Of a DNA stretch of 64,000 bases, positions 9,880 through 58,108 are shown piece after piece. Source of the stretch: Trichoplax adhaerens (Eukaryota > Animalia > Placozoa); NCBI RefSeq assembly GCF_000150275.1, contig NW_002060960.1, forward strand, positions 634,469-698,468, in the 5' to 3' direction. Made by a program: the position numbers and the translations under genes. The notes below the pieces were generated by a model. The model worked only from the letters and a program-made list of their open reading frames with translations. It had not been told where the DNA came from and searched no databases. The first letter of the stretch is position 1. Every line of letters starts with the position of its first letter.

Positions 9880-12800
9880 ATGTCTGAAAAGAAGCCCTAT
9901 GAAGAAGGTGGTGAAGAAGAGCCTGAACGAGGCCATTGGGGACATAAGATGGATTTTCTCCTGTCTTGTATCGGCTATGCTGTAGGTCTTGGCAACGTCT
10001 GGAGATTTCCGTACTTGTGTGCCGCAAGTGGAGGCGGTAAGCAAAAAATCCTTTTGATAAATTGAGTTTAAAGTTTGATTCTGCTTTCGTTCAAGATCAA
10101 TGATACATTGCTGGGATCGAGAGTACAGAGAGAACTGTAAAGTTATACTTTTACGAATATGAAAAGTGACACTCAATGCAAATGTAATATTGATCATCTT
10201 CTGTTCTACCCTAGGTGCTTTCTTAATTCCTTACTGCATCATGTTGATCCTTGTTGGTATACCAATTTTCTTTATGGAATTGACTATTGGTCAGTATTCA
10301 CAAGAAGGACCACTCAAAGTTTGGGAAAATATCTTTCCATTGCTAAAAGGTAAATTATATCTTGACCTCAATGGCTAAAAATGTCACCCTAAATTAGATT
10401 GCATCAGTAGCTCATGACGGGCAAATATCACTGTGCGCTAGAAATAATGCAATTCTACATTTTAAACATATGAAAAAAATGAGAATACCTTAAGCTTGTA
10501 CTGATCCATTACAATAAACATTTTTATGGATATTTAGGAGTTGGTTATGCTATGTTAGTCTGCTCTTTTGGTGTTGGAATTTACTATAATATCATCATTG
10601 CATGGTGCTATTACTTTTTATTTGCTTCCATGCAAAGTAAATTACCTTGGGCAAGCTGTGGTAATCCGTGGAACACTGCTCTCTGCAGGACTAGCGTTAC
10701 CCGTTGCCCAACAGCGAATGTTACTAACACGACAGGAGTTGTTACTACTGTTGCTCCAACCACAATGGCGAACAATATGACGAATTTGACTGCTTGCATT
10801 CCTAAAGGATTTAAAGTCACTTCTCCTAGTGAAGAATATTGGAAGTAAGTTAGCTCTACCTTGAAATAACTAACATAGAAGAGGTATCGCGCTGATTTGG
10901 ATTGCGTCCAACACCATACATCACTACTTTCACACTGATCTTTTCGATAATTTTAGATAGCCAATACGTAATTTAATTGAATAACTTTTTATTGGCTGTA
11001 GCTTCCTATTGATCATTTAACTTTAATCTATGTAGTAAACAAGTATTAGATATTAGCAAAGGAATTGGTGAGGCAGGCCATATTCGTTGGCATTTAGCTC
11101 TCTGCTTATTACTTGCTTGGATTGTTATCTACTTTTGCATCTTTAAAGGAATCAAATCCTCTGGCAAGGTGAATAAAATAGAATGATTGAAATTTATTGA
11201 TGTCAATCAGTTTATTCAATTATAATAATGGTAACATCCGTTGATGATCGCTTTTCTAGGTCGTTTACTTCTCTGCTACCTTCCCTTATGTTGTCTTGGT
11301 TATTCTGTTGATCCGTGGTGTTACCCTGAAAGGGCATCTAGAAGGAATTAATTTCTATCTCACGCCTCGATGGGAGAAACTTTCAGATGCAAATGTGTGG
11401 GCTTCCGCTACTACTCAAATTTTCTTCTCACTTAGTGTTGGATTCGGAGGTTTAATTACTATGGCCAGCTATAACAAGTTCTACAATAATTGCTTTAGGT
11501 ACAGTATCCAAGATCTTCGATATCAACTAACTCTATCTCAATTGTTAACACATTGTTGGCTTTTCAGCAGCAAAATATATCCAGTATAAATAGACTTTAA
11601 CTTACTGTTTATATCTGTTAATTCTAAAATATAGGGATTCTCTAACAGTATCTCTCATCAACTGTGGTACAAGTTTCTTTGCTGGTTTTGTAATCTTTTC
11701 TGTAGTTGGTTTCATGGCCAATTCCTCAGGCAGACAAGTATCTGAGGTTGCTGATCAAGGTAATAAAGATTTAGAAATTTTCATTACACGCGTCAAATGA
11801 ATCTTTGTCATAGTCTGCTTATTACAATAAGGAATGGATCAATTATTTTGTAACATTTATTTCCTAGGATGGATTTAATTAGACTGTATAAATGATTGAC
11901 GATGTTACTGTAATATATCGCTTAATCCGATTAAAAAATTCATTTTTTGCAGGTGTTAGCTTAGCCTTTATCGTTTATCCAGCTGCTGTAGCTGAAATGC
12001 CTGTATCGCAGTTATGGTCGATCATATTTTTCTTCATGTTGATCACCTTGGGTATGGATAGTCAGGTAAAATTTCTGCTTGCAAACTATTCATTCTTGAC
12101 TAATTAATTTATAACTAATGCTAAGAGAGAGATAGTAACGCTATACTATACAGATAAAGAAAAATAATCTATATAGCTCAATCTGCTACTAACATTGATC
12201 GATCTTGTCTATTGGATCCTTAGTTTGCATTTATGGAAACAATCATTACCGCTGCTGTTGATGAATACCCCAAAGTTTTAAGAGCTAAAAAATGGTTCAT
12301 CTCCATGATTGGTTGTATCACTCTCTACTTCTTGGGATTGCCATGCATTACCCAAGCTGGTGCTTACGTCTTACAATTGATGGATGATCATGTCGCTGGT
12401 ATCTCCCTGTTGATCTTGTGCATCTTTGAAGTTATTGGCTGCGGTTGGGGCTACGGTGCGTCGATTAATTTGCAAACAATCTAATTGGGATAACCTATAA
12501 TTGTTTTAAAAGCCATAGATTTGATCTGAGTTATTGATCTAATATTTCTGTGTTATACAGGCGCCTTCCAATTGATGAAAGATGTAGAAAAAATGATTGG
12601 CTATAAACCATTCTTGTATTACTGGTGGATAGGTTGCTGGAAGTTCTTGTCTCTTGCCACTTTACTAGTAAGTACTTCAAATTTGGCCAAAACTTTTACT
12701 TTTTTCATAGCAATATATGAAGCTGCTCTCCATGCATGCCTTCGATGATGTATCATTGCCAATACGAGCATAGCATTGATTAACATTTTTTCTTGTTGTT

Positions 12801-13181
12801 CTAGTTTGTTACAATCTTTAAAATTGTTGGTTATAAGAAATCTTCATTTGGTGGTAAGCCCATGCCCGATTGGGCCGACGGTGTTGGCTGGTTTATGGCC
12901 TGCTGTTCAATGGTTTTCATCCCAGGAGTTGCACTCTATAAAATGTTTACTACTGATGGCTCTTGGAGTGAGGTTGGTTGATAAAATTAGTGATCATGCT
13001 ACTTCTTTCTGGTAATCCATGATAGCACTAGATCACTCGCTAATACTAATTTCTTGTCACATTATAGCGTTTTCGAATCTTGACAACACCTCGTGATGAC
13101 AAATATGGTGATTTGCAAATTAGCGCTGTCGAACATGAGCTAAGAAAAGAAAACGGCCATAATATGGAACAAACTGTTTAA
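9880..13181 (+). CDS. SLC6 / NSS Na+/Cl- dependent transporter, amino-acid type (proline/glycine transporter-like), copy A; 11 coding exons, 609 aa
   Basis: Exons, all with GT-AG introns: 9880-10036, 10215-10349, 10538-10844, 11036-11168, 11260-11498, 11635-11759, 11953-12065, 12224-12455, 12561-12667, 12805-12972, 13068-13181. They sum to 1830 nt in frame and end in TAA. SLC6 motifs: [31 protein letters not shown] (TM1), GAFLIPY...MELTIGQY (TM2), YYNIIIAW (TM3), [14 protein letters not shown] (EL2), [18 protein letters not shown] (TM5), [11 protein letters not shown]...ASYN (TM6), [10 protein letters not shown] (TM7), LGMDSQFAFMET (TM8), LMDDH (TM10). Confidence 0.96.
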
Positions 13182-14780: not shown

Positions 14781-17474
14781 CTCATGATACTGGTCTATAT
14801 TCGTACGCGGATTGCTAGTAAATTTACATCAGTCGAAATATTCGAATGGATCACACCAATTTATTGCTGTATATTCGATGCTAAAACATGGCTATGAATG
14901 AAATTGAATGATTTTCTACCGGTAGACAGTCTTATTTATCATTGGTATTATCTGAGTGATTATTTAGAGTTTAATGTAACCTTTCTTCCCATCGCTACGA
15001 CAATAGTGAAAGCGAGAATTGCTTACGTTTTATGATTTGCTACCGATAAAATTCAGACACACAAAATTAGACTAGAGGACATTATTAGCAGCTCTTTAAT
15101 CTAGAGAAGTATATTGGACTTCTCAGGTAATGATATAATTTTATTGCCAAGGAAAATCTTTGTTTAACAATTCTTTGGTAGTATAGGGAAGAAAAGTAAC
15201 TGAAGCGTTGGGAACAAATAAATCAATATCTAGCCATTGATGTAATTATTTAATTTGTAAATTTCTTTAACAACCGTAAAAATAAACAAAAAATTATTAT
15301 TTACTGTTTATCTTGGTAATGGATGAGAATTAAGTAGTGGAATTAGTTATTTGGAGATAGCATTGACTCTTTTTCAATGTTTTCATAATTTTACAAAGCT
15401 ACATGAAAATTAGGTGGTAATAATGGATTATCATGATTTAATTAAACCGGCTTATGCGTATTAATATATTCGTTTAGGTTACTTATTCTAAAATGTTTAG
15501 AATTTTTTACATTGAGGGCAATCTTGATTGCAGCATCTTCGACGGGATGAATTGCCTGCTACTGTCCTTATTGCATGTTTGGTACTGTTCTTGCAATTTG
15601 GCTACTCTATATCCATGTTCAGTGAGACTGCTGATTTTCTTCAAATCGATTTAGGCTACGTAATTAAATAGTGCTGATGGTAGAAATCAATACGCTTCAA
15701 AACACGATCATTTCCTAAATCATTGGAATTCGAAGTGCATCACTGAAATACTATCCAAAACAAAAGTGCCGGACTACAGAAAATTTCCTACTAGTAAACC
15801 TCTTTTATAGCTTGTCAGAGCTTCGATTCTTCTTATATCCTCATCGATGTAATGAAAAACTTACCCGAAAATCAAAACTGATTATAGCCTGTATTTTAGT
15901 TTATAAATAGATACTAAGCGCAGCAAATAGGCAATCAAATTAATCATAATATGGACACCAAAATATCAATAGTATGTGGACAACTACCGTATCTGTTAAG
16001 GAAGCAGATAAGGAGAAAAGTTCTAATGTCGTCAACGTTGCTATTTTAGTACTGTTGAATTCTCATAGCGTAATTATACACTATTGTTTATAGATTGTTG
16101 TTAATCTCTAGTTATTAAATAAGATAAGCTCAGTAAAAATTAAGTATTAATATTATTAGTTTGACTTTATTAACGCTTTGTGATATCATGGCCTTTGAAG
16201 AATTCAATCTTACAAATTTCTGCAATTGTGTAAGTGATTTTCATTACTGATGTTAGATGAAAAATGTTATAAAATATGGCACATCTGTGCCAAGATATTG
16301 AGATGAATTTTAAGCAATAGATGAACGATCTCTCGGATATTACATCACAAATTGCCCTAATTTGGCCGAAATTCGACGATATATCTTCATTTTGATTGAA
16401 CTACATCCTCGTAGAATTAACTTTTATTTTCCATTTAAATTATAAACTTGCAAATTTTCATCACGTCTTAATCTTAAAATCAAATTTTAAACTTTCAAAA
16501 ACTCTTCTAATTTATGGGGTCATTATATCACCATAGTGAAAGTAACGCTTTTTAGTCCATTTGGACAATGAATTATTATAACGTAATCGTTGCTAATAGT
16601 GCAAGTTATGAAATGAACAACTGCTAATTTACGCCAATACAACAAATTGGCGATGGAAAAATAAGTTATTTGCCTCTGCTGCCCTAAATGATTTACTAAA
16701 CATTACATTAACATCAATATCTGAGTTTGAGTGTTTTCGACGATATCTTAACCGTCATCGCGGAAGGTAACTCCAATAACGGTACTTATTCCTCAGAAAA
16801 TGGCAATTCTATTGATAACTTGGATTAAAATATCATTTTAGTAGAAATAGCGCCGATGGCGCCTAAGATGTCGTCAAAGTTCGCTGAAATCAAAGTACCA
16901 ACTATGATAAGCATTCTTTTACTGATACTGATAATCTAGAAAAATCGGAAATATTTCTGTATTACTATTTTGGAGTCTTTAGTTCATTCATTGATTACAA
17001 TTGTCGTCGTAAGTGATTGTAATAAACTTTAAAAGAAATGAATTCAATGAAGTAGTGATAAAATTTGATGCAATAGGTTTCTTTATCCCAAAGCTTTCCC
17101 CAGAAATGCATTGAATGATTCAAGGGAATCCATTGATAGTCTATAGCTACCTTGTTGGCTGATTAAAGAAACCACACCTCTTTATTATATGATTTTTAAT
17201 TGATATACTCGAAAAACTTATTTACCTCTAAAATCACAATCATCAACTTTATGATAGGTATAATCAAAGAAAATAAAAGTAGATATAATACAACTTTAAG
17301 ACTATGAGATTGCCGTGAATTTTGTAAATTGCTAACAAGGATAATTCGGTAATCACCCAAACCAATTTACCGTTGACGCCGCGTTTGATCCATTAACACC
17401 TAGCAATTTCTGCTGATAAAGTACAAATACCAAGTATGTAATAGCTAATACATAGTTAGAACAAAGCTAGGATT

Positions 17475-19100: not shown

Positions 19101-19239
19101 GATGTATTAGATAAATAAGCACTTACGATGTATTGGTTTTGCGAAAATTTAATATTGCTTATTAAAAGTATTTTTAAAAATTTTACTAAATTGTCGATCA
19201 GAGTCTTCGAAACAACTAAGTAACTCTACCGGTAATACA

Positions 19240-22200
19240 ATGGCTACAGAAATGGCTACGAATCATGCAAATGGTACATCTAATGAATCTAATGAAGCAA
19301 AACGAAGTCACTGGAATAAAAAGATGCAATCATTACTGTCTTCTATCGGATATACGGTTGGCTTAGGCCATATATGGGAATTTCCCTATCTTTGCGCGAC
19401 TAATGGAGGAGGTATATAAATCCGACACAGAATCGATTATGATTAACGAAATCATCAGCAACATTTATGGATTAGATGCGGTTATTGCAACCAAAAATCG
19501 GATCTAAGTCCAATTTGTATTTATTGCAGTGAAATATTAAAAATTTATAGTTGTGTGAAATAAGTCAATCTCTGAGGAGTATCTCTACGATCTGATACCA
19601 TGGATTTGAGATGGGCTTACGAGTATATAGGGTGAAAATCAAATTTGGTAGTAAATTGTACTCCAATTGGTATAAGCAACTGTTATTAGGTTCGATGGAT
19701 CCTAATAACTAATTTCAAAATACTTCTGGCGTCAGTTTCTATATCGCTTCAGTTCCTCAACTTAGCCATATCATTTTATATGCTTTTCCACTGCAGTGCA
19801 AATCACAATGAGTTTTTGATATGAAGAAGGAATCTTAAATTTTTAGCTATGGTCTTAATTACTATATTTATAGTACAAGAAAGAGACAGTTGTATTAGTT
19901 TAGCTATAGTCTTAATAATGCTACTATACCTGTCTAATGAGTAGTTTTTTGAGTTTGCCAAAGATAAGTAGCCATATCTAAAGAACTATAGAATTAAGAG
20001 CAAGAATTCTTAATATTTTCTTAACCATTAAAATCAAAATAATGCTAATGATTTTATATTTATTACAGCTGCTTTCCTGGTAGCATACTTCGTCATCTAT
20101 ATCATCATAGGAATTCCCATTTTATTTATGGAATTAGCCATCGGTCAGTATGCTCAAATGGGAAGCTTGCAAATGATGGCTCATTTATTTCCAATACTGA
20201 AAGGTGATCGCTTATTTTTGAGTGCATCTTAAAAATACCTTGCAATATCCATCTTTAGTAATATTAAACCTGAAATACTTAGTTTTCTTCAACCTTTGAT
20301 ACAACATAAAACATTTAAAAGATATCTTTTCAAATTAATAACTGCTTTGATTTATTAGGTGTTGGCTATGCAATGATTATTTGCTCCTTTGGAACAGCAA
20401 TTTACTATAACGTTATGATTGCGTGGTCGTGTAATTTTCTGTTTGCCTCTATGCAAAGCGAACTTCCTTGGGCAGGATGCGAACATGATTGGAATACAAA
20501 TAGATGTCGTACATATGATATTAAGTGCCAACCATTTAATTATTCATTATCAAATATCTCAAATAGCCCAACATTAATAAGCTTAACTTATTGGGGATTA
20601 ATTCCTTCACAAAGTAGCAATCTAACGGCTCCAACCGATGAATTTTGGAAGTAAGCTAAGTACCACATCATAGCTGATGAAGTATAATCTATTCTTCGGT
20701 TGCTCTATAACATATTAGCGTAGTTGAAACAGCTTAATAATGCATACTTATTAGTAGAATAACAAATTATCACTAAATCCGTAATAGGTAATAGGTAATC
20801 TGCTCTACAGCTGTCCTACAAGTTATTAGTATAGTTTGAGCCCGTGAGATTGTATATATATACCCGCATTTATCAGCACAACGACGAACTTTATATGCTA
20901 TAACTGCGTTCATGAATGCTAATACATAATTTATTCTGCAGCTGTCCTACAAGGTGGTAGGTTAAGTGATGTAAGGTTACATATTTATTAGCACAATAAA
21001 CTATATACGCTAACACTACCCCCCCCCCCCCCCACATGGTTACTAATGCATGATCTACTCTGCAGCTGCAAGGTCTAAGTGCTAAGTGTAGTTCAAGCGG
21101 CATAATATTGTATATTTATTAGTAAAGCAATAAACTGCTACCACTACATCCATGATTGCTAAAGCATAATTTACTCTACTGCTGTACTACAACACAGTAA
21201 TGTAGGTTAAAGTGCGTAATATTGTATATTTATTAGCATCTTAATAAGCTAGAGTTAATTGTCAAATACCTAATTCCTATAATATATAACAGTCGTATGG
21301 TCTTGAAAATCAATGCAAATATTAACAATTTCGGTGAAATGCAATGGAATACAGCACTATGTTTACTGCTAGCTTGGCTAATTGTCTATATCTGCATCTA
21401 TAAGAGTATCCAATCCTTTAGTAAGGTAGTTCTGATTTAAGTTGATTTTGTCTTATAACCTTGTCAGTGCATTATTATTAATACAAGACCTAAATTCATT
21501 GGTGTATTTATCGCCAATGCAGGTTGTCTATTTTTTCGTGCTATTTCCTTACCTAACGCTAGTGGTAATAATAGTTCGTGGAACAACATTATCTTGCAGT
21601 AAAGCTGGAATCCTATTGTATTTTCATGCTGGATGGGAAAAATTGGGCCAAGTAGATGTGTGGTCAAAAGCTGCTACCCAAGTATTGAAGTCTCTTGGTC
21701 TAGGATACGGCTGCTTAATTACCATCGGCAGCCATAATAAATTCAATAACAACTGTTTCAGGTAGTAATAAAGAAAGCTTGCTTTTATATCTTATATTAT
21801 TTAAGATCATCGATGACTTTTGCGGTAAAATAACACAGATAAAATTTATAAGTTAGTCATTAATAATTTATTCTTTCATTGCGATCAGAGATGCTATGCT
21901 CGTATCTCTGTTTAACGGTATTACTAGTTTGTTAGCTGGACTAGCGATGTTTAGTTTTACTGGGTTTCTGGCATTTGCAAATAATGGACAAGTGGACAAT
22001 ACTATTGAAGGAGGTATTTCTGATACGAATTAATTTATTGTTAATGGCAAGGATTAGTTCAGAGAGCAATCTACATTGTTTCGTATATAAAACTGATTTA
22101 CTTTTAACATACTTATCTACAGATTTCGATATGTATCAGTAATTTACAGTTACTTTTGCAAATTGCAAATTTAAGAATACCTTGTTGAATAGCCATTCTT

Positions 22201-23716
22201 TGTTAGGCATTAGACTAGCTTTCGTAGCTTATCCTTTAATGGCAGCTCAAGTCTCTTTGCCCAAGTTGTGGTCGATCTTGTTTTACTTGATGGTTATGAT
22301 GTTAGGCTTAAGTACTCAGGTTAACTTTACTTTTTTTAACATTAAATATACGTAAATATTTGGTATTGATGCAGTACGGATAAAATAAGATTTCTCATTC
22401 TTATTCAAGAATTAAATTACTGCATGTATGGTATGATGTAGACTCGGAATATTCTAAAAAACGAGTAGCTAGTATATTGAACTATAAGATTGCGACGTTA
22501 CTGTTATAAACTTATATAATAACACTTGATATTTAGGTTATGTACTTAGAGAATATTCTCGTAGTAGTATTGGATAGTTTCCCAAAAAGTGTTGGCGCAA
22601 GAAAGAGAACAAGTGTTATTAGTTTGTTAATATGCTGCACTATCTATGGCATTAGTTTACCATGCACTACTCAGGCAGGATATCATATAGTCAATTTGAT
22701 GGCTAATCATTTTACTGGGATATCAATTCTTATTATATGCCTATTTGAAAGTATTGCCATTGGATGGGGCTACGGTAGGCGATAATAAGATTGTAAATGT
22801 TACCCCTTTGCTTCTGCTGTATGGCATGGCATTTATCAAAACCTTTTAATTTCTTTAAGCTGATATAAATAGTCGACATTAATATGCACGCCTTGTATGT
22901 TTGCATCTTGATTATGTGTAGGCTCTATTAAACTAGGAAAATCTGTAACCAAAATGATTGGTTATAAACCATGGTTGTATTATTGGTGGATTTTCTGCTG
23001 GATTAGTGTAGTTCCCGTTTTTCTTATGGTATACTGGATGTTTATAATTCGATTTTTAATATTATACAACTATTATTAAATCATAATAGCATCCTCTATA
23101 ATTATTTGTTGTATTTTAATTGATCTTCAGTAGCGTTTACTTTAGCCATAGGTTTCTGATTAAAGCCATATAAAATGATCTTTTCCTTTGTTTAATTAAG
23201 TTAACATCCAAGAAATAGCTCATTATTGTGCTTGCTACATCTACTATAGGCTCTCGCAGTATATGAAACTTTTAGATACCTATTAGTGCAAGCCAATATG
23301 CCAATATCACAATCAAGACTTCCTTCTCGAGCAATGAATTGGGCATTAACGTCGTATTCACTTTTATTTATTCTCCTCTTTGCAATCTGTCAATTAATGA
23401 ATACAAATACAATCAAGGTTGGTTACTTCCTGGTTTTATTTGGGCACGATAGATTTAAATACAGTAATTTAGAAATTATTTAAATTTTCTTAGTATAAGT
23501 GAATATCCCAATTTAAACTTAGCCTGTCGTTTTGAGATCCTGTTTATTAGCAAGTTATATATTATATCTGTTTTACATTACAATTGCCATCATTACTAGG
23601 GATGTTATGAACTCTTTAAGCCAAAAAAAGATATTTATGGTGACTTACAACTTAACATACAAAGTCAACGAGGAAAGTGGCATCGTGTTCCAACTCCTAC
23701 TTTAACTTATACTTAG
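19240..23716 (+). CDS. Divergent SLC6 / NSS family transporter-like protein, copy B (tandem paralog of copy A); 11 coding exons, 612 aa
   Basis: Exons, all with GT-AG introns: 19240-19411, 20069-20203, 20359-20650, 21293-21425, 21523-21761, 21889-22013, 22207-22319, 22537-22774, 22922-23028, 23250-23417, 23600-23716. They sum to 1839 nt with no internal stop and end in TAG. Intron phases match copy A and seven internal exons have identical lengths (135, 133, 239, 125, 113, 107, 168 nt). Motifs: RSHWNKKMQSLLSSIGYTVGLGHIWEFPYLC, MELAIGQY, YYNVMIAW, LPWAGCEHDWNTNRC, NKFNNNCFRD, MIGYKPWLYYWW. The start codon could instead be the ATG at 19252. Confidence 0.93.
20795..21238. repeat. Intronic degenerate tandem repeat (~120-130 bp, ~4 copies) with a C15 homopolymer, in intron 3 of SLC6 copy B
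   Basis: taat.t..tct.ca.gctg.c.tacaa...ttgtatatttattag recurs. The C15 run is at 21019-21033. Confidence 0.7.
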
Positions 23717-25207: not shown

Positions 25208-25510
25208 AAATCAGGATAATTGATATAATCTTGTGAATAGTAACCCATTGATAAGTTACCGTACCTCGGAAAAATCACGCTATTTAAGTAATCTTCTATA
25301 TCACGGGGACGATGAAAACAGTGTACTAATTTTTAATCTCGAAGAATATCGCTGCATCACATGTATTCCCGTAGTATTGGTAATAAAATCTCAGGATAAT
25401 TGACACAATTATGCGAATGCTAGCCCCATAAGCTACATCAAGAATAATGTTGTTTAAGTAATCTGCTCTATTTTAGGGGGCGATAAAAATAACACACTAA
25501 TTCTATTCTT
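25208..25510. repeat. Degenerate direct duplication (~125-130 bp, 2 copies) abutting the truncated 3' end of the FUT pseudogene
   Basis: tcaggataattga...tttaagtaatct...gggg.cgat.aaaa...actaatt occurs at about 25211-25340 and 25391-25510. Confidence 0.65.
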
Positions 25511-26089
25511 GGTATTATTATTAGCTACATTTTGAATATGATTGACTAAATCTTCGATAGTATGAAAATCTTGGGCATTAATATAGGATTCAGGTGGAGC
25601 AATATCAGTAGCGATTGGATTTTCCATCGTCCGATAGACCCATAATTGTTGATAGGGCTTGGTCTTGATCGATGGATAGTATTCTTGATCGGTTATTTTT
25701 GGGCTTAATCCATGAAATACTATAATATCGCTACTCTTATATTGACTGTGATCTCTTGTAATTTCGCATAGTCTATAATTAAAAAGTATTGGATCTGATT
25801 ATATAGGCTATGGACCATTAAACCATGGTGTCCATAATAATGTATTTGGCTTTTCCTCAATAATGATATCATGAGGCTTTATGGGAGTTTTAGTTTCAGT
25901 AGTGGTTGATAGAATACATTTGACATCTAGTCTCTGGTTGATATTATCAATAATAACTTAAACATCTTCTACCGAAAGCAAAGGTCGACTGTAGATGCAT
26001 ATGGCTACTTTTTGAAAATGACTAATGAAATAAACTTGGGTAATGTTTAAAATGATACAAACAATCTCACTAATTGTCTTCCATCGCAT
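25508..26089 (-). pseudogene. Alpha-1,3-fucosyltransferase (GT10/FUT family) pseudogene, internally deleted and 3' truncated
   Basis: One - strand frame from ATG 26089 reads MRWKTISEIVCIILNITQVYFI...VEDV*...KPNTLLWTPWFNGP*PI*SDPILFNYRLCEITRDHSQYKSSDIIVFHG...KPYQQLWVYRTMENPIAT-DIAPPESYINAQDFHTIEDLVNHIQNVANNNTK. It has a short N-terminal hydrophobic anchor, the GT10 N-lobe motifs (LLW, C-x-IT-x-D, SDxxVFH, Q-x-WV...E-x-P) and the GT10 C-terminal PxxS(F/Y)IxxxDFxxxxxL...N motif. In-frame stops lie at 25958-25960, 25808-25810 and 25799-25801. Confidence 0.85.
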
Positions 26090-35987: not shown

Positions 35988-36419
35988 TAATTGGATTCCC
36001 ATTTACCTTAAACGCCACTATTTAACGTTTCTGATTTACCGACCGGATTAGTTTATTTCAGAAGTTTAAGGACCCCTATTAGAAGCCAATTTTGGAAGGC
36101 ATCATTTGAAGGACTTGCCGGTTTACCGCTATCGCTAAGCATCATTTTAAATAGTCAAATTTAACTATCGGTTGTTGTTGAAAATAAAAGTTAAAGATTT
36201 AATTTCATGGATTCTGATTAAGCTCTTCTAGAACAGCAATCCGCTAGACTCAGTATTGAATCGCTTAACCAAGGAAAAGATAATCTATTGACATCCAAAT
36301 TCTTTCATCAGCTTCTGCAAGATTAAAATTTCTAGCGGCAAATAACTTTCTAATCTGCACTTTACTGATAGCATAAGCAGTAAGAAATTCTCCTATTTGC
36401 ATTATATCCAAACATTATC

Positions 36420-37511
36420 ATGGCATTAATAGCAAACGACTCTTTCTTCCTAACTGAAAGTAATATGACTATCTTATCGACCGGCCAAACACCATCTTCT
36501 CTATTCTATGTCATCAATCCTACGTTATTCGCAATTTCCATGATATTATTAAGCGCTGGAATCATTGGTAATTTCTTTGTCGTCCTGACGATCATTGTAG
36601 GTAAAGAAAAATGTAAGCAAATTGCATATTATCAAATTGGTTACTATGCTTTTGCCAACGTTGTTTACTGCGTCTTTTTCATGCTATTGCAAATCATGAC
36701 GATGAAGCAAAATCAATTCTATCAGGAAGTCTATGTAAAGATGCAAAGTAATATATCGGTATTACTGGAGATGGCGTCTTCATCTTCATTACATCAACAA
36801 TTAATCGACTCGACTATTCGTTGGCCCTACTGTGAAATTTGTTTCTCCTTAATGTTTACTTCAACCATGGCATCGACATTAATTCTAGCCCATACCAGTA
36901 CTAATTGGTATAAGACGTTGAAAAATAATCGTAAGAGTAGAGTTTTAACACCTAAGCGTTTAGTCTGCAAGATGATATTGATTTGGTTTGCAGCTTCTAT
37001 CCTATCTGTACCTTATGCACTCATTATAGTTAGAACGTCCACAAACAGTTCCTTAGGTTGCAGATTTGAAAATTATAACTCGCCATTGCTCCTTTGGTAC
37101 GCTTTAGCAAATGGTTTATTTATGGGAGTAGTCCCAGGCTTTACCATCATTTATAGCTATGGAAGAGTAATACGTATCTTTCAACATAATATTCATGCAC
37201 TAGAATTAGGAATAACCTTAAACCGTCAAGAAAGTGAGTGGCAGATTAAACAGCACTCCATCGTGAAATTGCTAATGTTTGTTGCAGCAGTTTATATCCT
37301 ATTTATGATACCTTACATTGTGGCAGTTGTCTATATTTCAGTGGGTCGTCAAAAGTACTTCTATGATCCAAAAGATGATGTTTATCTCTTTGAATTTTAT
37401 AATATTCCATCCACTGCCGTTACCATTTTGTTTGCCTTGAATCCGATGATTTATATGGCTTATAACCAATTAATGAAGAAGGGGTTCCGATGTTCCTATT
37501 TTTTATCTTAG
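36420..37511 (+). CDS. Class A (rhodopsin-like) 7TM GPCR, orphan, single coding exon, 363 aa
   Basis: Seven hydrophobic segments. TM1 GN, Cys3.25 in WPYC, W4.50 (IWFAASILSVP), ECL2 Cys, TM5 P and Y (VVPGFTIIYSY), TM6 FMIPY, TM7 NPMIY and helix 8 (NQLMKKGF) followed by a Cys. N-terminal sequons NDS and NMT. DRY is replaced by NWY. Confidence 0.92.
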   Translation: MALIANDSFFLTESNMTILSTGQTPSSLFYVINPTLFAISMILLSAGIIGNFFVVLTIIVGKEKCKQIAYYQIGYYAFANVVYCVFFMLLQIMTMKQNQFYQEVYVKMQSNISVLLEMASSSSLHQQLIDSTIRWPYCEICFSLMFTSTMASTLILAHTSTNWYKTLKNNRKSRVLTPKRLVCKMILIWFAASILSVPYALIIVRTSTNSSLGCRFENYNSPLLLWYALANGLFMGVVPGFTIIYSYGRVIRIFQHNIHALELGITLNRQESEWQIKQHSIVKLLMFVAAVYILFMIPYIVAVVYISVGRQKYFYDPKDDVYLFEFYNIPSTAVTILFALNPMIYMAYNQLMKKGFRCSYFLS

Positions 37512-54500: not shown

Positions 54501-56755
54501 AGTTGTGTGATTATAGTAATTATTTACAAAATTTTAAATATTATTTTCTTCAGGGGGTCTTATCAGATGTATACTCATAATAAAATCATGTTCATATTAG
54601 AGAACCAACTACTACCCTATGCATAAAACGATATTACTGTCTTAGGCCCTGTCAATTCTAACAAAGATACTAAATCACTTACTTAATTTTGATTTTAAAA
54701 TATCGGCTTAGCCGAGAAATAGTTATTTAATAAAGTTTTCTATAAAGTATAAAATTTATGATAAACTTATTATTTATTTATTCCTAGTTCTATATCTATA
54801 GAATAGACCTTTAAGGTTATAGATGCCGACACAATCTTATATTTTAAACTTTACACATCAATCGCAGCAAAAATATGAGACCATTGAATTAAAGATATAG
54901 CTACTAGTTTCAACGCTAAGATTTAGTTAATTTTCACACTCATATCAATATAACTTAAGCAAACTAATTTCCTGAAAAGTTATTATAGTCGATTGTGAAT
55001 TACTTCATTAATTATATCATAATACACGTACATTACCTATTTAATTAGTAAATTCTCGGAATATTCGAGACCAATTAGCAGACGGATACATGAAATAATA
55101 GTAGTACAGGTTGCTGAAAATCGAATCTCTTATAATGATAAATGGTCTGTTTAGTGAATAGATTACTAAGCCAAAAGGTATCGGTACGTATTATATTTTT
55201 TAATTTCTTGCATTGATCGTAGCCATAACATGAAATCATTTAATTAAAGTTTTAGCTGATAGTTTAAATGGCAAGCTCTAAAAGACATACCCTTTGGAGT
55301 TAAAATAGCATTTCACAGTATACAATATATAAGAAACGAGAGAGTTGAATTTTTAACTTTACATTAACTATTGCAATTTCTTTTTTCAATCAACGTAATT
55401 TACAAGAAAAATACCTCTAAATTTCAATCATGACCAAACGCGTAAAGGACTACGAAAGTGTAATATGTATAAAATTAATTGACCTTATAGTATTAAAAGT
55501 ATCAAAAAGAGAGTACATCCTTTTATCTTCCCTACTTCTTCAGTACTAACTCCTGACTACGCTATATTTTGTATGCTTTGTAGAGCAATTAAATTATCCA
55601 ATAAATACTATAAATGATCAATCTAAAATATTTTTAATTAATCTGGCTGTTAATCGCATGAGCTCAGGAAAATTTTGTTATAGATTCTCTAATATTAAGA
55701 AAGCGTAAGATCATCAGCTTAAGCAATCCGTAAACAGCCTAAAACTGAGATTAATCAATATTCACAATTTAGAACCCAGATAAATGAACGAATTTATTTG
55801 TATGCTAAGTGCGAAAATAACTTAATTTTCACTTCAATTCAAAAAATTAGTTGTTATTATAAGTGTACATGTACGACTGTAGCGAAGTGATGTTAAGTCA
55901 TATTGATACTGATACTAAGTTCTACGACCTTAACTAGAACCTAACGCAATAAGGTGAGTTATTACATCGACGTATACATAATAATACATATATATATTCT
56001 CTACTTCTTTATTACAAGCTTCAAACTGCGCTATTTTTGTACGCTTTGAAGAGGAATTGATGTTATCAAATAATAAAAGATCAATTCAAAGTGCCGTACT
56101 TTTTAGTGAAATATTTGTTAATCGCACATGTTCAGAAATATTTTATCATGGACTCTTTGACATTAATAAGTTAATAATGAATCCAAAATGTAACTCAAAG
56201 TGAATCAGTCTACGATTATTAGCTAAAGCAATCCAAGTAGCATACAATTGAAACAGATCAATATCTACATAATAGGACCTAGATAAATAATGGAAATCAC
56301 TTTATGCTATGTGAGAAAGTAATATAATTTCTTTTGTAATTCATAAAAATTTGCTAGTATTATTAGCGCATTTTTCTGTCCTATTTTTGTCAACAATATT
56401 ACTAATTTATCTACTGTATACAATTTATAATGTTAACGATGCCATTTCATGACAGAAAATTTCTAACTTTAACCTTAACTATATTTGATTAAAATTATCT
56501 AATTTTTATTCTTCTCTTAGGTATATATGTTATATAAACCTTGAAATGTATTACTGAAAAGGATTTAACTAGCACTCTACAAGAATTTATTTCCAGAAAG
56601 TAGATAAAGGTAGAAAAGACTATATGGAAATTAGCTCTTTCAGTCATTGATTTACCATTATAGCATCAATATTGCAAAACCATTCTATTCCAATCTGTGA
56701 TGCAGGGTCATTGTAATTGATAGCTTATATAACTATTTCTGCAAATACTGAAGAT

Positions 56756-58108
56756 ATGAATTTCGTAAGTCATATGTCATCCTTTTCAAGCCCATTTTCT
56801 ACACCTAGTTACAATTCTACAATCAATCCTGGCGTAAATCATTGCGGATATCCAGATCATCATCGTTTTAATCCCGAACAAAATTCTGAAACACTCCACT
56901 TTAACTCTTACAGCGCTATTATATCATGGATTACAATTGGAATTTATATCTGGAGTTTAATTTCGAATTCAATGATTGCCGCAACAATCTTAGCGCGAAA
57001 GCAGCTACACTCATTATCATTTTATCAAATTCTTAATATTTCATTAACTGGTATCGTTTTTAATTTGTCGGCTCTATCGACTGAATTTATTAATTACCTC
57101 GTCCTCTCCGTACATCGTACAACTTTCACACCGCTTTCCATTTTGCCGGGAAATTTAACGCAACAAACATTTCCTAATACTAGCTACGCTGTATTACACT
57201 CCAATACAATATTTTCTGCAAATAATGAAGATCATATAAAGTATTCCAGTTTTCCAGTATGTCAAATGCTGATCGGAATCATTTTTACGAGTATCAATGC
57301 GGGCACATTTATCCTAGTAGCTATTGGTATACACCATTATTTTGCTGTTTATAGAAGTGTTCGTCAAAATATCAGTACAAAGCGATATATCTTGATAACG
57401 GTTGCTATTTGGCTTTTTGCTACAGGATTTTGTATCCCTTACGCATGGCTGACCATTAAAACTTACTACAATACGTCAACTAGCCGTATTTGTGCTTTTA
57501 CTAGCTCTAATAGAAGTCAGCTTATTCTTGCTTATACTATTGTTTTTATTGCTATTACGTCTCTCTTTCCTTACGTAGTTATGTGCGTATGTTATTCCAT
57601 TGTCATTTATAAACTTTACTATGGTGTCCAAATACGTCTACGAAAGCCCAATTTTTTCTGGAACGTCAGTAATTCTGAACATGACTACCAATATGATCGT
57701 AAAGTAAAAGCAGGCATTCGTCTAATAATTATTATAACGTTACTGTATATGTTGTGCTTGTCACCGTATTCCGTTGGGCTAGTTCTTGCTGCAGCCACTC
57801 ACTTTCATCCGACTTCTTCCTTTACAAGTAGAAATGGTAATATTACTGCTTTTATTCCATTCGATAATACTGAAAGTGAAAATGTATCAGTAATTTATGG
57901 CACAAATATTGGTATTTTATTTGGTATCGCCATCGTTTGTTTGTCTGTCTTATTTGCTTTCACTCCAGTTGCTTACCTTATTTGTAATCAAAGATTACAA
58001 AAAGAATTTATTCACGGTCTATTATGCCGTTCATATATACAACAGCGTAGAAATAAAGTGACTGCTTTTAGTATTAGGAGCAGACAAAATCCTAAAGTAG
58101 GTCCATGA
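56756..58108 (+). CDS. Class A (rhodopsin-like) 7TM GPCR, orphan, single coding exon, ~450 aa
   Basis: The ORF track starts at a TTG (56717); the first in-frame ATG is 56756. Seven TM segments, N1.50 (LISNS), Cys3.25 (FPVC), W4.50 (IWLFATGFCIPY), ECL2 Cys, TM5 FPYVVMCVCY, TM6 CLSPY, TM7 TPVAY and helix 8 NQRLQKEF...LLC. DRY is replaced by HHY. Confidence 0.92.
   Translation: MNFVSHMSSFSSPFSTPSYNSTINPGVNHCGYPDHHRFNPEQNSETLHFNSYSAIISWITIGIYIWSLISNSMIAATILARKQLHSLSFYQILNISLTGIVFNLSALSTEFINYLVLSVHRTTFTPLSILPGNLTQQTFPNTSYAVLHSNTIFSANNEDHIKYSSFPVCQMLIGIIFTSINAGTFILVAIGIHHYFAVYRSVRQNISTKRYILITVAIWLFATGFCIPYAWLTIKTYYNTSTSRICAFTSSNRSQLILAYTIVFIAITSLFPYVVMCVCYSIVIYKLYYGVQIRLRKPNFFWNVSNSEHDYQYDRKVKAGIRLIIIITLLYMLCLSPYSVGLVLAAATHFHPTSSFTSRNGNITAFIPFDNTESENVSVIYGTNIGILFGIAIVCLSVLFAFTPVAYLICNQRLQKEFIHGLLCRSYIQQRRNKVTAFSIRSRQNPKVGP

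Follow-up and report, generated by a model that had tools for sequence, protein, structure and literature searches.

Organization of the SLC6 tandem array and gene structure of copy B

We analyzed a 64,000-nucleotide stretch of the Trichoplax adhaerens genome (C1397:634469-698468 of an assembly of 105.6 Mb in 1414 contigs), hereafter the window, focusing on TRIADDRAFT_31455 (identical database protein P0001), a member of the SLC6 transporter family referred to here as copy B. Copy B occupies 19240-23716 on the forward strand, where 11 coding exons (1839 nt with the stop) form an intact frame of 612 codons and all ten introns carry GT-AG boundaries, which bears out the intact reading frame and preserved splice sites described in an earlier sequence-only reading of this stretch. 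Its canonical tandem paralog, copy A, lies 6 kb away, head to tail on the same strand; intron phases are identical between the two genes, and 7 of the 11 exons are equal in length. Both gene models were built from open frames, GT-AG sites, and their mutual consistency, and three residues are all that separate the model of A from P0153, the annotated Trichoplax sp. H2 protein. For B, the database entry P0001 stops short at 531 aa, since it reads on past the donor of coding exon 9, and it also takes another acceptor at exon 5. Similarity searches were run with individual exons or with the database proteins P0001, P0151, and P0153 as queries. The SLC6 tandem array comprises four genes, of which A is the third and B the fourth and last. 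In the member at 607 kb, upstream of the window, tblastn matches exons 7 and 8 without a gap (L026 2655-2765 and 2766-2909), suggesting that an intron was lost there. The possibility that the T. adhaerens assembly contains B twice, as a second copy or a haplotig, was considered and ruled out. A literature search for TRIADDRAFT_31455 returned no paper under any identifier tried, and general Trichoplax and SLC6 searches returned nothing specific to it.

Evidence for expression was drawn from Logan contigs, which speak to presence and splicing rather than to expression level. Contigs from X4 and X7, which represent two independent studies, revealed removal of all ten predicted B introns at exact GT..AG boundaries, and a single 2023-nt contig from X7 runs from coding exon 3 to exon 11. 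The spliced contigs in both sets dispose of the possibility, raised in the sequence-only reading, that B has no transcript. An upstream piece is joined at 19202 in both X4 and X7; contig ends of both are loose at this base, and an X7 30-mer from the joined piece matches 17404-17433, which places a non-coding 5' exon of B there. Contigs were also observed inside introns 1 and 3 of B (X4 at 19448-19612, 20672-20975, and 21137-21292; X7 at 20758-20935), and these are consistent with pre-mRNA, partial intron retention, or some DNA in the libraries. In run X1, exons and introns of B are covered alike and without joints, and this run behaves as DNA. The features of the array and of copy B are as follows, in window positions (TM, transmembrane helix) except for the two upstream genes, which are given in contig positions.

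C1397:607445-609426 (locus L026), same strand as A and B: further canonical SLC6 gene upstream of the window
C1397:626213-629057 (locus L027), same strand as A and B: further canonical SLC6 gene upstream of the window
9880-13181, + strand: copy A, canonical tandem paralog, 11 exons, 609 aa
17359-17433, + strand: non-coding 5' exon of B; 3' end defined at 17433, 5' end approximate (75-106 nt of contig sequence upstream of the joint)
19202-19411, + strand: B exon with the ATG (19240), TM1a/b; His44 at 19369-19371, Glu47 at 19378-19380; joint 19411/20069 in X4 and X7; Pfam SNF 9.6e-13
20069-20203, + strand: B coding exon 2, end of TM1b and TM2; AAFLVAY in place of GAFLIPY, a motif shared with the metagenome contig L001 described below
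20359-20650, + strand: B coding exon 3, TM3 and extracellular loop 2
21293-21425, + strand: B coding exon 4, TM4; codon 218 is TGG at 21345-21347 and TAG in the Trichoplax sp. H2 assembly
21523-21761, + strand: B coding exon 5, TM5 and TM6; Leu299 and Lys300 (AAG, 21688-21690) in place of the FF pair
21889-22013, + strand: B coding exon 6, TM7; Asn and the Thr-Ser motif kept
22207-22319, + strand: B coding exon 7, extracellular loop 4 and TM8; GLSTQ in place of GLDSQ at the second sodium site (Na2)
22537-22774, + strand: B coding exon 8, TM9 and TM10; Ala459 (GCT, 22702-22704) and Asn460 in place of DD
22922-23028, + strand: B coding exon 9, first half of TM11
23250-23417, + strand: B coding exon 10, end of TM11 and TM12; holds four of the nine nonsynonymous variants
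23600-23716, + strand: B coding exon 11, C-terminal tail and stop

Copy B belongs to the SLC6 family and is predicted to keep its fold

Membership in the family was established with Pfam PF00209 (SNF), against which each of the four B exons tested scored above the 27-bit cut-off (36-88 bits, exon by exon below the scores of A); P0001 carries the same domain. An AlphaFold2 model of P0001 built on a 42-sequence alignment reached a mean pLDDT (predicted local distance difference test) of 85.8 and a pTM (predicted template modeling score) of 0.87, and its helix breaks by DSSP, at P0001 residues 36-38 and 300-304, coincide with the expected unwinding of TM1 and TM6. Foldseek superposed this model on Drosophila DAT (dDAT, 4xph) with a template modeling score of 0.85 and a root-mean-square deviation of 1.8 Å. 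TM12 has no counterpart in the truncated P0001 and is present in the exon model of B. The structural model indicates that B is a protein with the 12-TM LeuT/SLC6 fold, predicted with TM1 and TM6 unwound.

Human GlyT2 (SLC6A5; PDB 9wbr and 9hue) is the best sequence match to B among solved structures, at about 37% identity across TM1-TM11, and the two have in common the fold, the Cl-site residues, the inner gate, and the TM3 Tyr. This match would fit a place for B in the glycine/proline/ATB0,+ subfamily, and the tree puts the placozoan cluster near that branch, although the node joining the cluster to ATB0,+/PROT-like sequences has a support of only 30. Closer to home, copy A and TRIADDRAFT_50950 (P0152) resemble B in their 11 exons, their identical intron phases, and their place in one monophyletic placozoan cluster (support 99), and differ from it in sequence: they are 48-50% identical to B and 84% identical to each other, and both keep all the canonical gate and ion-site residues.

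Residue changes concentrate at the outer gate and the Na1 site

Copy B reads GLGHIWEFP in TM1, TQVLKSLG in TM6, and LMANH in TM10, where copy A and human GlyT2 have N..R, FF, and D, respectively (LMDDH being the TM10 motif of A). According to the review PMC6742698, the TM1 Arg and the TM10 acid (LeuT R30-D404, SERT R104-E493) and the TM6 lid Phe (LeuT F253, SERT F335) have the outer-gate roles that the sequence-only reading ascribed to them. LeuT numbering follows that source and general background, as the bacterial-homologue route to a LeuT alignment gave only eukaryotic structures on top. The substituted codons lie in three exons, namely coding exons 1, 5, and 8 (Glu47, GAA, 19378-19380; Lys300, AAG, 21688-21690; Ala459, GCT, 22702-22704), and here the gene model and the alignment to GlyT2 agree with the sequence-only reading in full. 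This phmmer alignment of P0001 with full-length human GlyT2 (9wbr_A, E 1e-110) sets H44, E47, L299, K300, and A459 of B against N213, R216, F475, F476, and D633, and further pairs G303 with S479 and Y306 with W482.

Few residues in the whole neurotransmitter:sodium symporter (NSS) family are as conserved as the TM1b arginine. An alignment of 40 homologues, from animals to bacteria, has Arg at this position in 40/40, where B has Glu, in line with the high conservation that had been claimed for the gate residues. The asparagine of the first sodium site (Na1; LeuT N27) is present in 39/40 and is His44 in B; the lid residue is Phe or Tyr in 37 and Leu in 3 of the 40, with Lys300 in B; and the TM10 acid is Asp or Glu in 33/40, where B has Ala459 and has lost the neighboring Asp to Asn as well (DD to AN). 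Copy B lacks the extracellular-gate salt bridge between TM1b Arg and TM10 acid (Glu47, Ala459), the aromatic TM6 lid that is F253 in LeuT (Lys300), and the Na1 Asn (His44). The intracellular gate is present, with its N-terminal Arg and Trp and its TM8 Asp (R5, W8, and D369 equivalents), and B also keeps the TM6 Gln (Q250), TM3 Tyr (Y108), TM2 Glu, TM7 Asn, and Cl-site Ser. The TM6b Tyr is His in B and likewise in 6 of the 40 homologues. At the Na2 position in TM8, B has Ser-Thr (GLSTQ), where 30/40 homologues have Asp and 5/40 Ser; this pair is LeuT-like, so the Na2 site may be kept. The comparison with LeuT of Aquifex aeolicus is two-sided: the fold with unwound TM1 and TM6 is shared, and the Na2 Ser/Thr of B is nearer to LeuT T354/S355 than to the eukaryotic Asp, whereas R30, D404, F253, and N27 are all replaced.

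Counting across the 74 usable columns conserved in at least 85% of the 40 homologues, B deviates at 11, against 2 for A and 2 for the canonical paralog U2; beyond the three gate changes, 8 more highly conserved columns are altered in B. The sequence-only reading had listed the three swaps correctly and had missed the Na1 Asn-to-His change, the loss of the second TM10 acid, a Pro-to-Ala change in AFLIPY, and the 5' exon. Judged from the residues that changed and those that were spared, the concentration of damage on the outer gate and Na1 looks like the pattern of a functional shift and not of random decay.

The other TM1 exons of T. adhaerens provide a genomic background for these changes. Asn and Arg are both present in 18 of the 19 examined, and the remaining one has Lys for Arg. 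A paralog at C1386:46475-46640 (L022) reads GFGNLWKFPNL, which combines the gate Arg-to-Lys change with Tyr to Asn in the FPY motif. The SLC6-like gene at C1412:5942500-5951500 (L028) is much more degenerate; it has FIGQISHFPY in TM1 (Asn to Gln, Arg to His) and AMAEAVQTYFVASG in TM6, and is the only gene in the T. adhaerens genome with His at the TM1b Arg position. With this degenerate gene present, B is not the sole non-canonical SLC6 gene of the genome.

A B-type relative outside Trichoplax and the age of the lineage

Searching exhaustively with HMMER and coding exon 3 of B as query, we recovered a single fragment, P0002, which is 56% identical and lies on L001, a metagenome contig of 1333 bp from the European Nucleotide Archive (ENA). 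B-type exons 2-5 are open on this placozoan-like contig, with canonical splice sites and phases, and in a comparison with the T. adhaerens genome both exons tested match B best. The relationship is further strengthened by motifs specific to B that are also found in L001 (AAFLVAY, TLSC, and SLGLG(Y/F)G) and by a maximum-likelihood tree in which B and L001 form a clade with a support of 100 by the Shimodaira-Hasegawa-like approximate likelihood ratio test and a stem of 0.80. Its sister group consists of the canonical A, U1, U2, and L003, and the whole placozoan cluster has a support of 99. The path from root to tip measures about 1.1 to B and 0.36 to A. On this evidence, the sequences indicate that the B type is an old, retained lineage, one that predates the split from the organism behind L001.

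At the lid, L001 has Met (ATG) for the Lys (AAG) of B and Ile for its Leu299. Starting from a canonical TTY codon, an ATG ancestor requires three steps and an AAG or TTG ancestor requires four; with the fewest steps under an ATG ancestor, the lid Phe would have been lost to Met before the split, with Lys arising later by one transversion.

Exon-level searches of a 5.8-billion-protein set for B-type TM1 and TM10 fragments found none, and the metagenome fragments that did turn up were in single-member clusters only. Two Joint Genome Institute metagenome loci matched by P0001 were rejected as unrelated SLC6 genes, nearer to A than to B. A separate metagenome contig, L003 (ENA ERZ23499115, 2776 bp, 9 exons present), is a close relative of TRIADDRAFT_50950 with 87% identity over exons 2-5. 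Since both L003 and L001 come from metagenomes, placozoan DNA evidently turns up in public metagenome assemblies, which can be mined for B-type sequence.

Selective constraint on copy B

By the Nei-Gojobori method over exons 2-5, B and L001 differ by 0.32 nonsynonymous (dN) and 1.64 synonymous (dS) substitutions per site, a ratio of 0.195 that is far from the value near 1 named in the sequence-only reading as a sign of decay and that is rough, as this dS is near saturation. The canonical pair U2 and L003 gave a dN of 0.08, a dS of 1.08, and a ratio of 0.074, likewise rough and far from 1.

Polymorphism was assessed from variants in X1, X4, X7, and X14 and in the H2 assembly, all within the Trichoplax H1/H2 group. 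Copy B carries 9 nonsynonymous variants over 1442 sites and 8 synonymous variants over 394, giving a ratio of nonsynonymous to synonymous polymorphism per site (pN/pS) of about 0.31, and this shortage of nonsynonymous change reaches nominal significance (binomial test against neutrality, P=0.017). The TM12 exon holds four of the nonsynonymous variants and the tails two. His44, Glu47, Lys300, and Ala459 show no variant in X1, X4, or X7, and the H2 protein is identical at all four. The H1 and H2 sequences, at about 99.5% identity, are too close for a separate dN/dS; they differ at 4 synonymous and 5 nonsynonymous sites in B and at 6 and 3 in A (Fisher P=0.64). Turning to the marks of a pseudogene, the frame and splice sites of B are unbroken in the window and in the X4 and X7 transcripts; the H2 assembly allele does carry a nonsense codon. 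Neutral evolution together with a missing transcript is contradicted by the pN/pS, by the dN/dS, and by the spliced contigs.

Interpretation and alternative explanations

From the sequence states, expression, splicing, selective constraint, and fold of B, we infer what its transport behavior may be. On balance, we lean modestly toward the view that B is transcribed and functional and belongs to a placozoan-specific offshoot, old and fast-evolving, of a tandem cluster of SLC6 amino-acid transporters, with predicted alterations in gating and coupling. The preference of the sequence-only reading for neofunctionalization over decay is supported in this respect by transcription with splicing, nonsynonymous depletion, the intact L001 exons, and the retained inner gate, TM6 Gln, TM3 Tyr, and Cl-site Ser. 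Mechanistically, B would be without the Na1 asparagine (now His44) and without the outer thin gate (Glu47, Ala459 with its neighboring Asn, and a Leu-Lys lid), so that no Arg-Asp latch would connect the bundle to TM10, and a cationic Lys and a titratable His would stand at the mouth of the substrate/Na1 pocket. The Na1 ligand would be lost, the Na2 and Cl sites plausibly kept, and the outer gate either weakened or re-made. Such a protein would not be expected to run the standard Na+/Cl--coupled cycle; most likely its ion coupling would be changed and its outer gate looser, and it would work as a carrier or else as a leak or binding protein. Locally, Glu47 and Lys300 may cancel each other's charge, as a late lineage-specific refinement rather than a co-evolved gate.

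Mutants of GAT1 offer an experimental comparison, as the same Arg/Asp pair is altered in them: R69K and R69K/D451E abolish transport (PMC10137170). Given that R69K is dead, the Glu-bearing B is very unlikely to run the standard cycle. These mutants are engineered and transport-dead, whereas B is natural, under purifying selection, and far more radically changed; its retention despite such a gate change implies compensation elsewhere or a different job.

Several observations weigh against B being a maintained, functional gene. It evolves 3-4 times faster than its neighbors, under weaker constraint than the canonical paralogs, and its comparison with L001 relies on a near-saturated dS and on a metagenome-derived contig that covers exons 2-5 only. 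In the Trichoplax sp. H2 assembly (GCA_003344405.1), direct alignment revealed a nonsense change in B coding exon 4, W218* (TGG to TAG; contig L002:12131, window 21346), and the annotated H2 protein of B, P0151, skips this exon. The DNA-like X1 contigs end exactly at the W218 base (19333-21345 and 21347-23004), which suggests that the codon 218 site is polymorphic or heterozygous. Given W218*, B may be dispensable. The X4 and X7 transcripts carry TGG at this codon, and one nonsense allele in a clonally propagating animal is weak evidence. A disrupted ortholog, which the sequence-only reading had said would count against its proposal, is thus seen in part, in H2. The automatic name given to the exon-skipped H2 model, "Sodium-dependent serotonin transporter," is misleading.

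The main rival builds on these points and proposes early decay, in which transport was lost after duplication along with the essential Arg, Asn, and Phe, and B, still transcribed, is drifting toward a pseudogene. We consider this unlikely. The H2 nonsense codon and the X1 contigs ending at the same base would fit it, as would the 11 conserved-column deviations against 2 in A, the per-exon Pfam scores below those of A, a root-to-tip path three times longer, and the fact that GAT1 R69K is already dead (PMC10137170). Against decay stand a B-type lineage older than the L001 split in which both members nevertheless have open exons and canonical splice sites, a dN/dS of about 0.2 and a pN/pS of about 0.3 (P=0.017), and correct splicing of all introns in two studies; the inner gate, TM6 Gln, TM3 Tyr, and Cl site have been spared, and in an animal that propagates clonally, one heterozygous nonsense allele is nothing unusual. 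Decidedly unlikely in our assessment is the charge-swapped gate proposed in the sequence-only reading, in which Arg to Glu, Phe to Lys, and Asp to Ala co-evolved and a Glu47-Lys300 ion pair closes the outer gate. Its appeal is evident, as all three residues have changed and are fixed in every sample seen, the polarity is complementary, both TM10 acids that would repel the Glu are lost, and the intact inner gate suggests a still-cycling protein; moreover, the TM1b Arg adjoins the TM6 lid Phe in solved NSS structures (PMC6742698), so Glu and Lys could plausibly touch. The claim that all three partners changed together is not supported by the comparison with L001, the sole B-type relative, which has Met (ATG) at the lid, so that by parsimony Lys came as a later single-step change rather than a simultaneous one. 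TM1b and TM6a are both bundle helices that rock against the scaffold, and the canonical latch, formed by Arg and Asp, connects that bundle with TM10. With Glu47 and Lys300 both on bundle helices, the pair could not, under the rocking-bundle model, serve as a state-dependent latch to TM10 as Arg-Asp does. The idea that this pair replaces the Arg network is likewise not supported, the pair being intra-bundle, not a feature of the clade, and accompanied by eight further changes at conserved columns, which place the three gate changes in a generally fast-evolving protein.

A last alternative, which we hold to be the least probable of those considered and improbable in itself, has the Lys300 ammonium in the substrate/Na1 pocket standing in for Na1, which would make B a Na1-independent or proton-linked carrier. 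There is a precedent in ApcT, a Na+-independent LeuT-fold transporter in which a lysine occupies a sodium site. In B, the Asn found in 39/40 homologues has become His44 in the same TM1 motif, Lys300 directly precedes Ser301, the equivalent of the LeuT Na1 ligand Thr254, and the Na2-type Ser/Thr and Cl-site residues are kept. The Met of L001 at this position speaks against a charge surrogate as a feature of the clade, and such an arrangement would leave Glu47 unpaired in the vestibule.

Neighboring genes

Elsewhere in the window, two long intronless frames at 36384-37508 and 56717-58105, both on the forward strand, encode 375 and 463 aa and match rhodopsin-family G protein-coupled receptors (7tm_1, E 1e-16 and 3e-15, respectively). 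A family-10 fucosyltransferase exon (Glyco_tran_10_N) lies at 25457-25798 on the reverse strand; the H2 contig has the same fucosyltransferase gene downstream of B, a sign of conserved synteny.

Implications for the SLC6 family and for placozoans

With Glu at the TM1b position, a Lys lid, and His at Na1, B offers a natural means of testing what in the outer gate and the Na1 site is indispensable, and how ion coupling in the LeuT fold can be rewired. The presence of a canonical paralog alongside, with identical exon structure, makes clean reciprocal swaps possible. More speculatively, and with a probability that we consider low, the residue pattern of the B type may define a natural class of the NSS fold without the Arg-Asp outer latch and the Na1 Asn, which would comprise Lys/His-based proton-linked or single-Na+ carriers or non-transporting amino-acid sensors in an animal for which amino acids, glycine among them, serve as behavioral cues. 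The existence of copy B underscores that placozoans, which are nerveless and have about 20 SLC6 genes, diversified this family in unusual directions.

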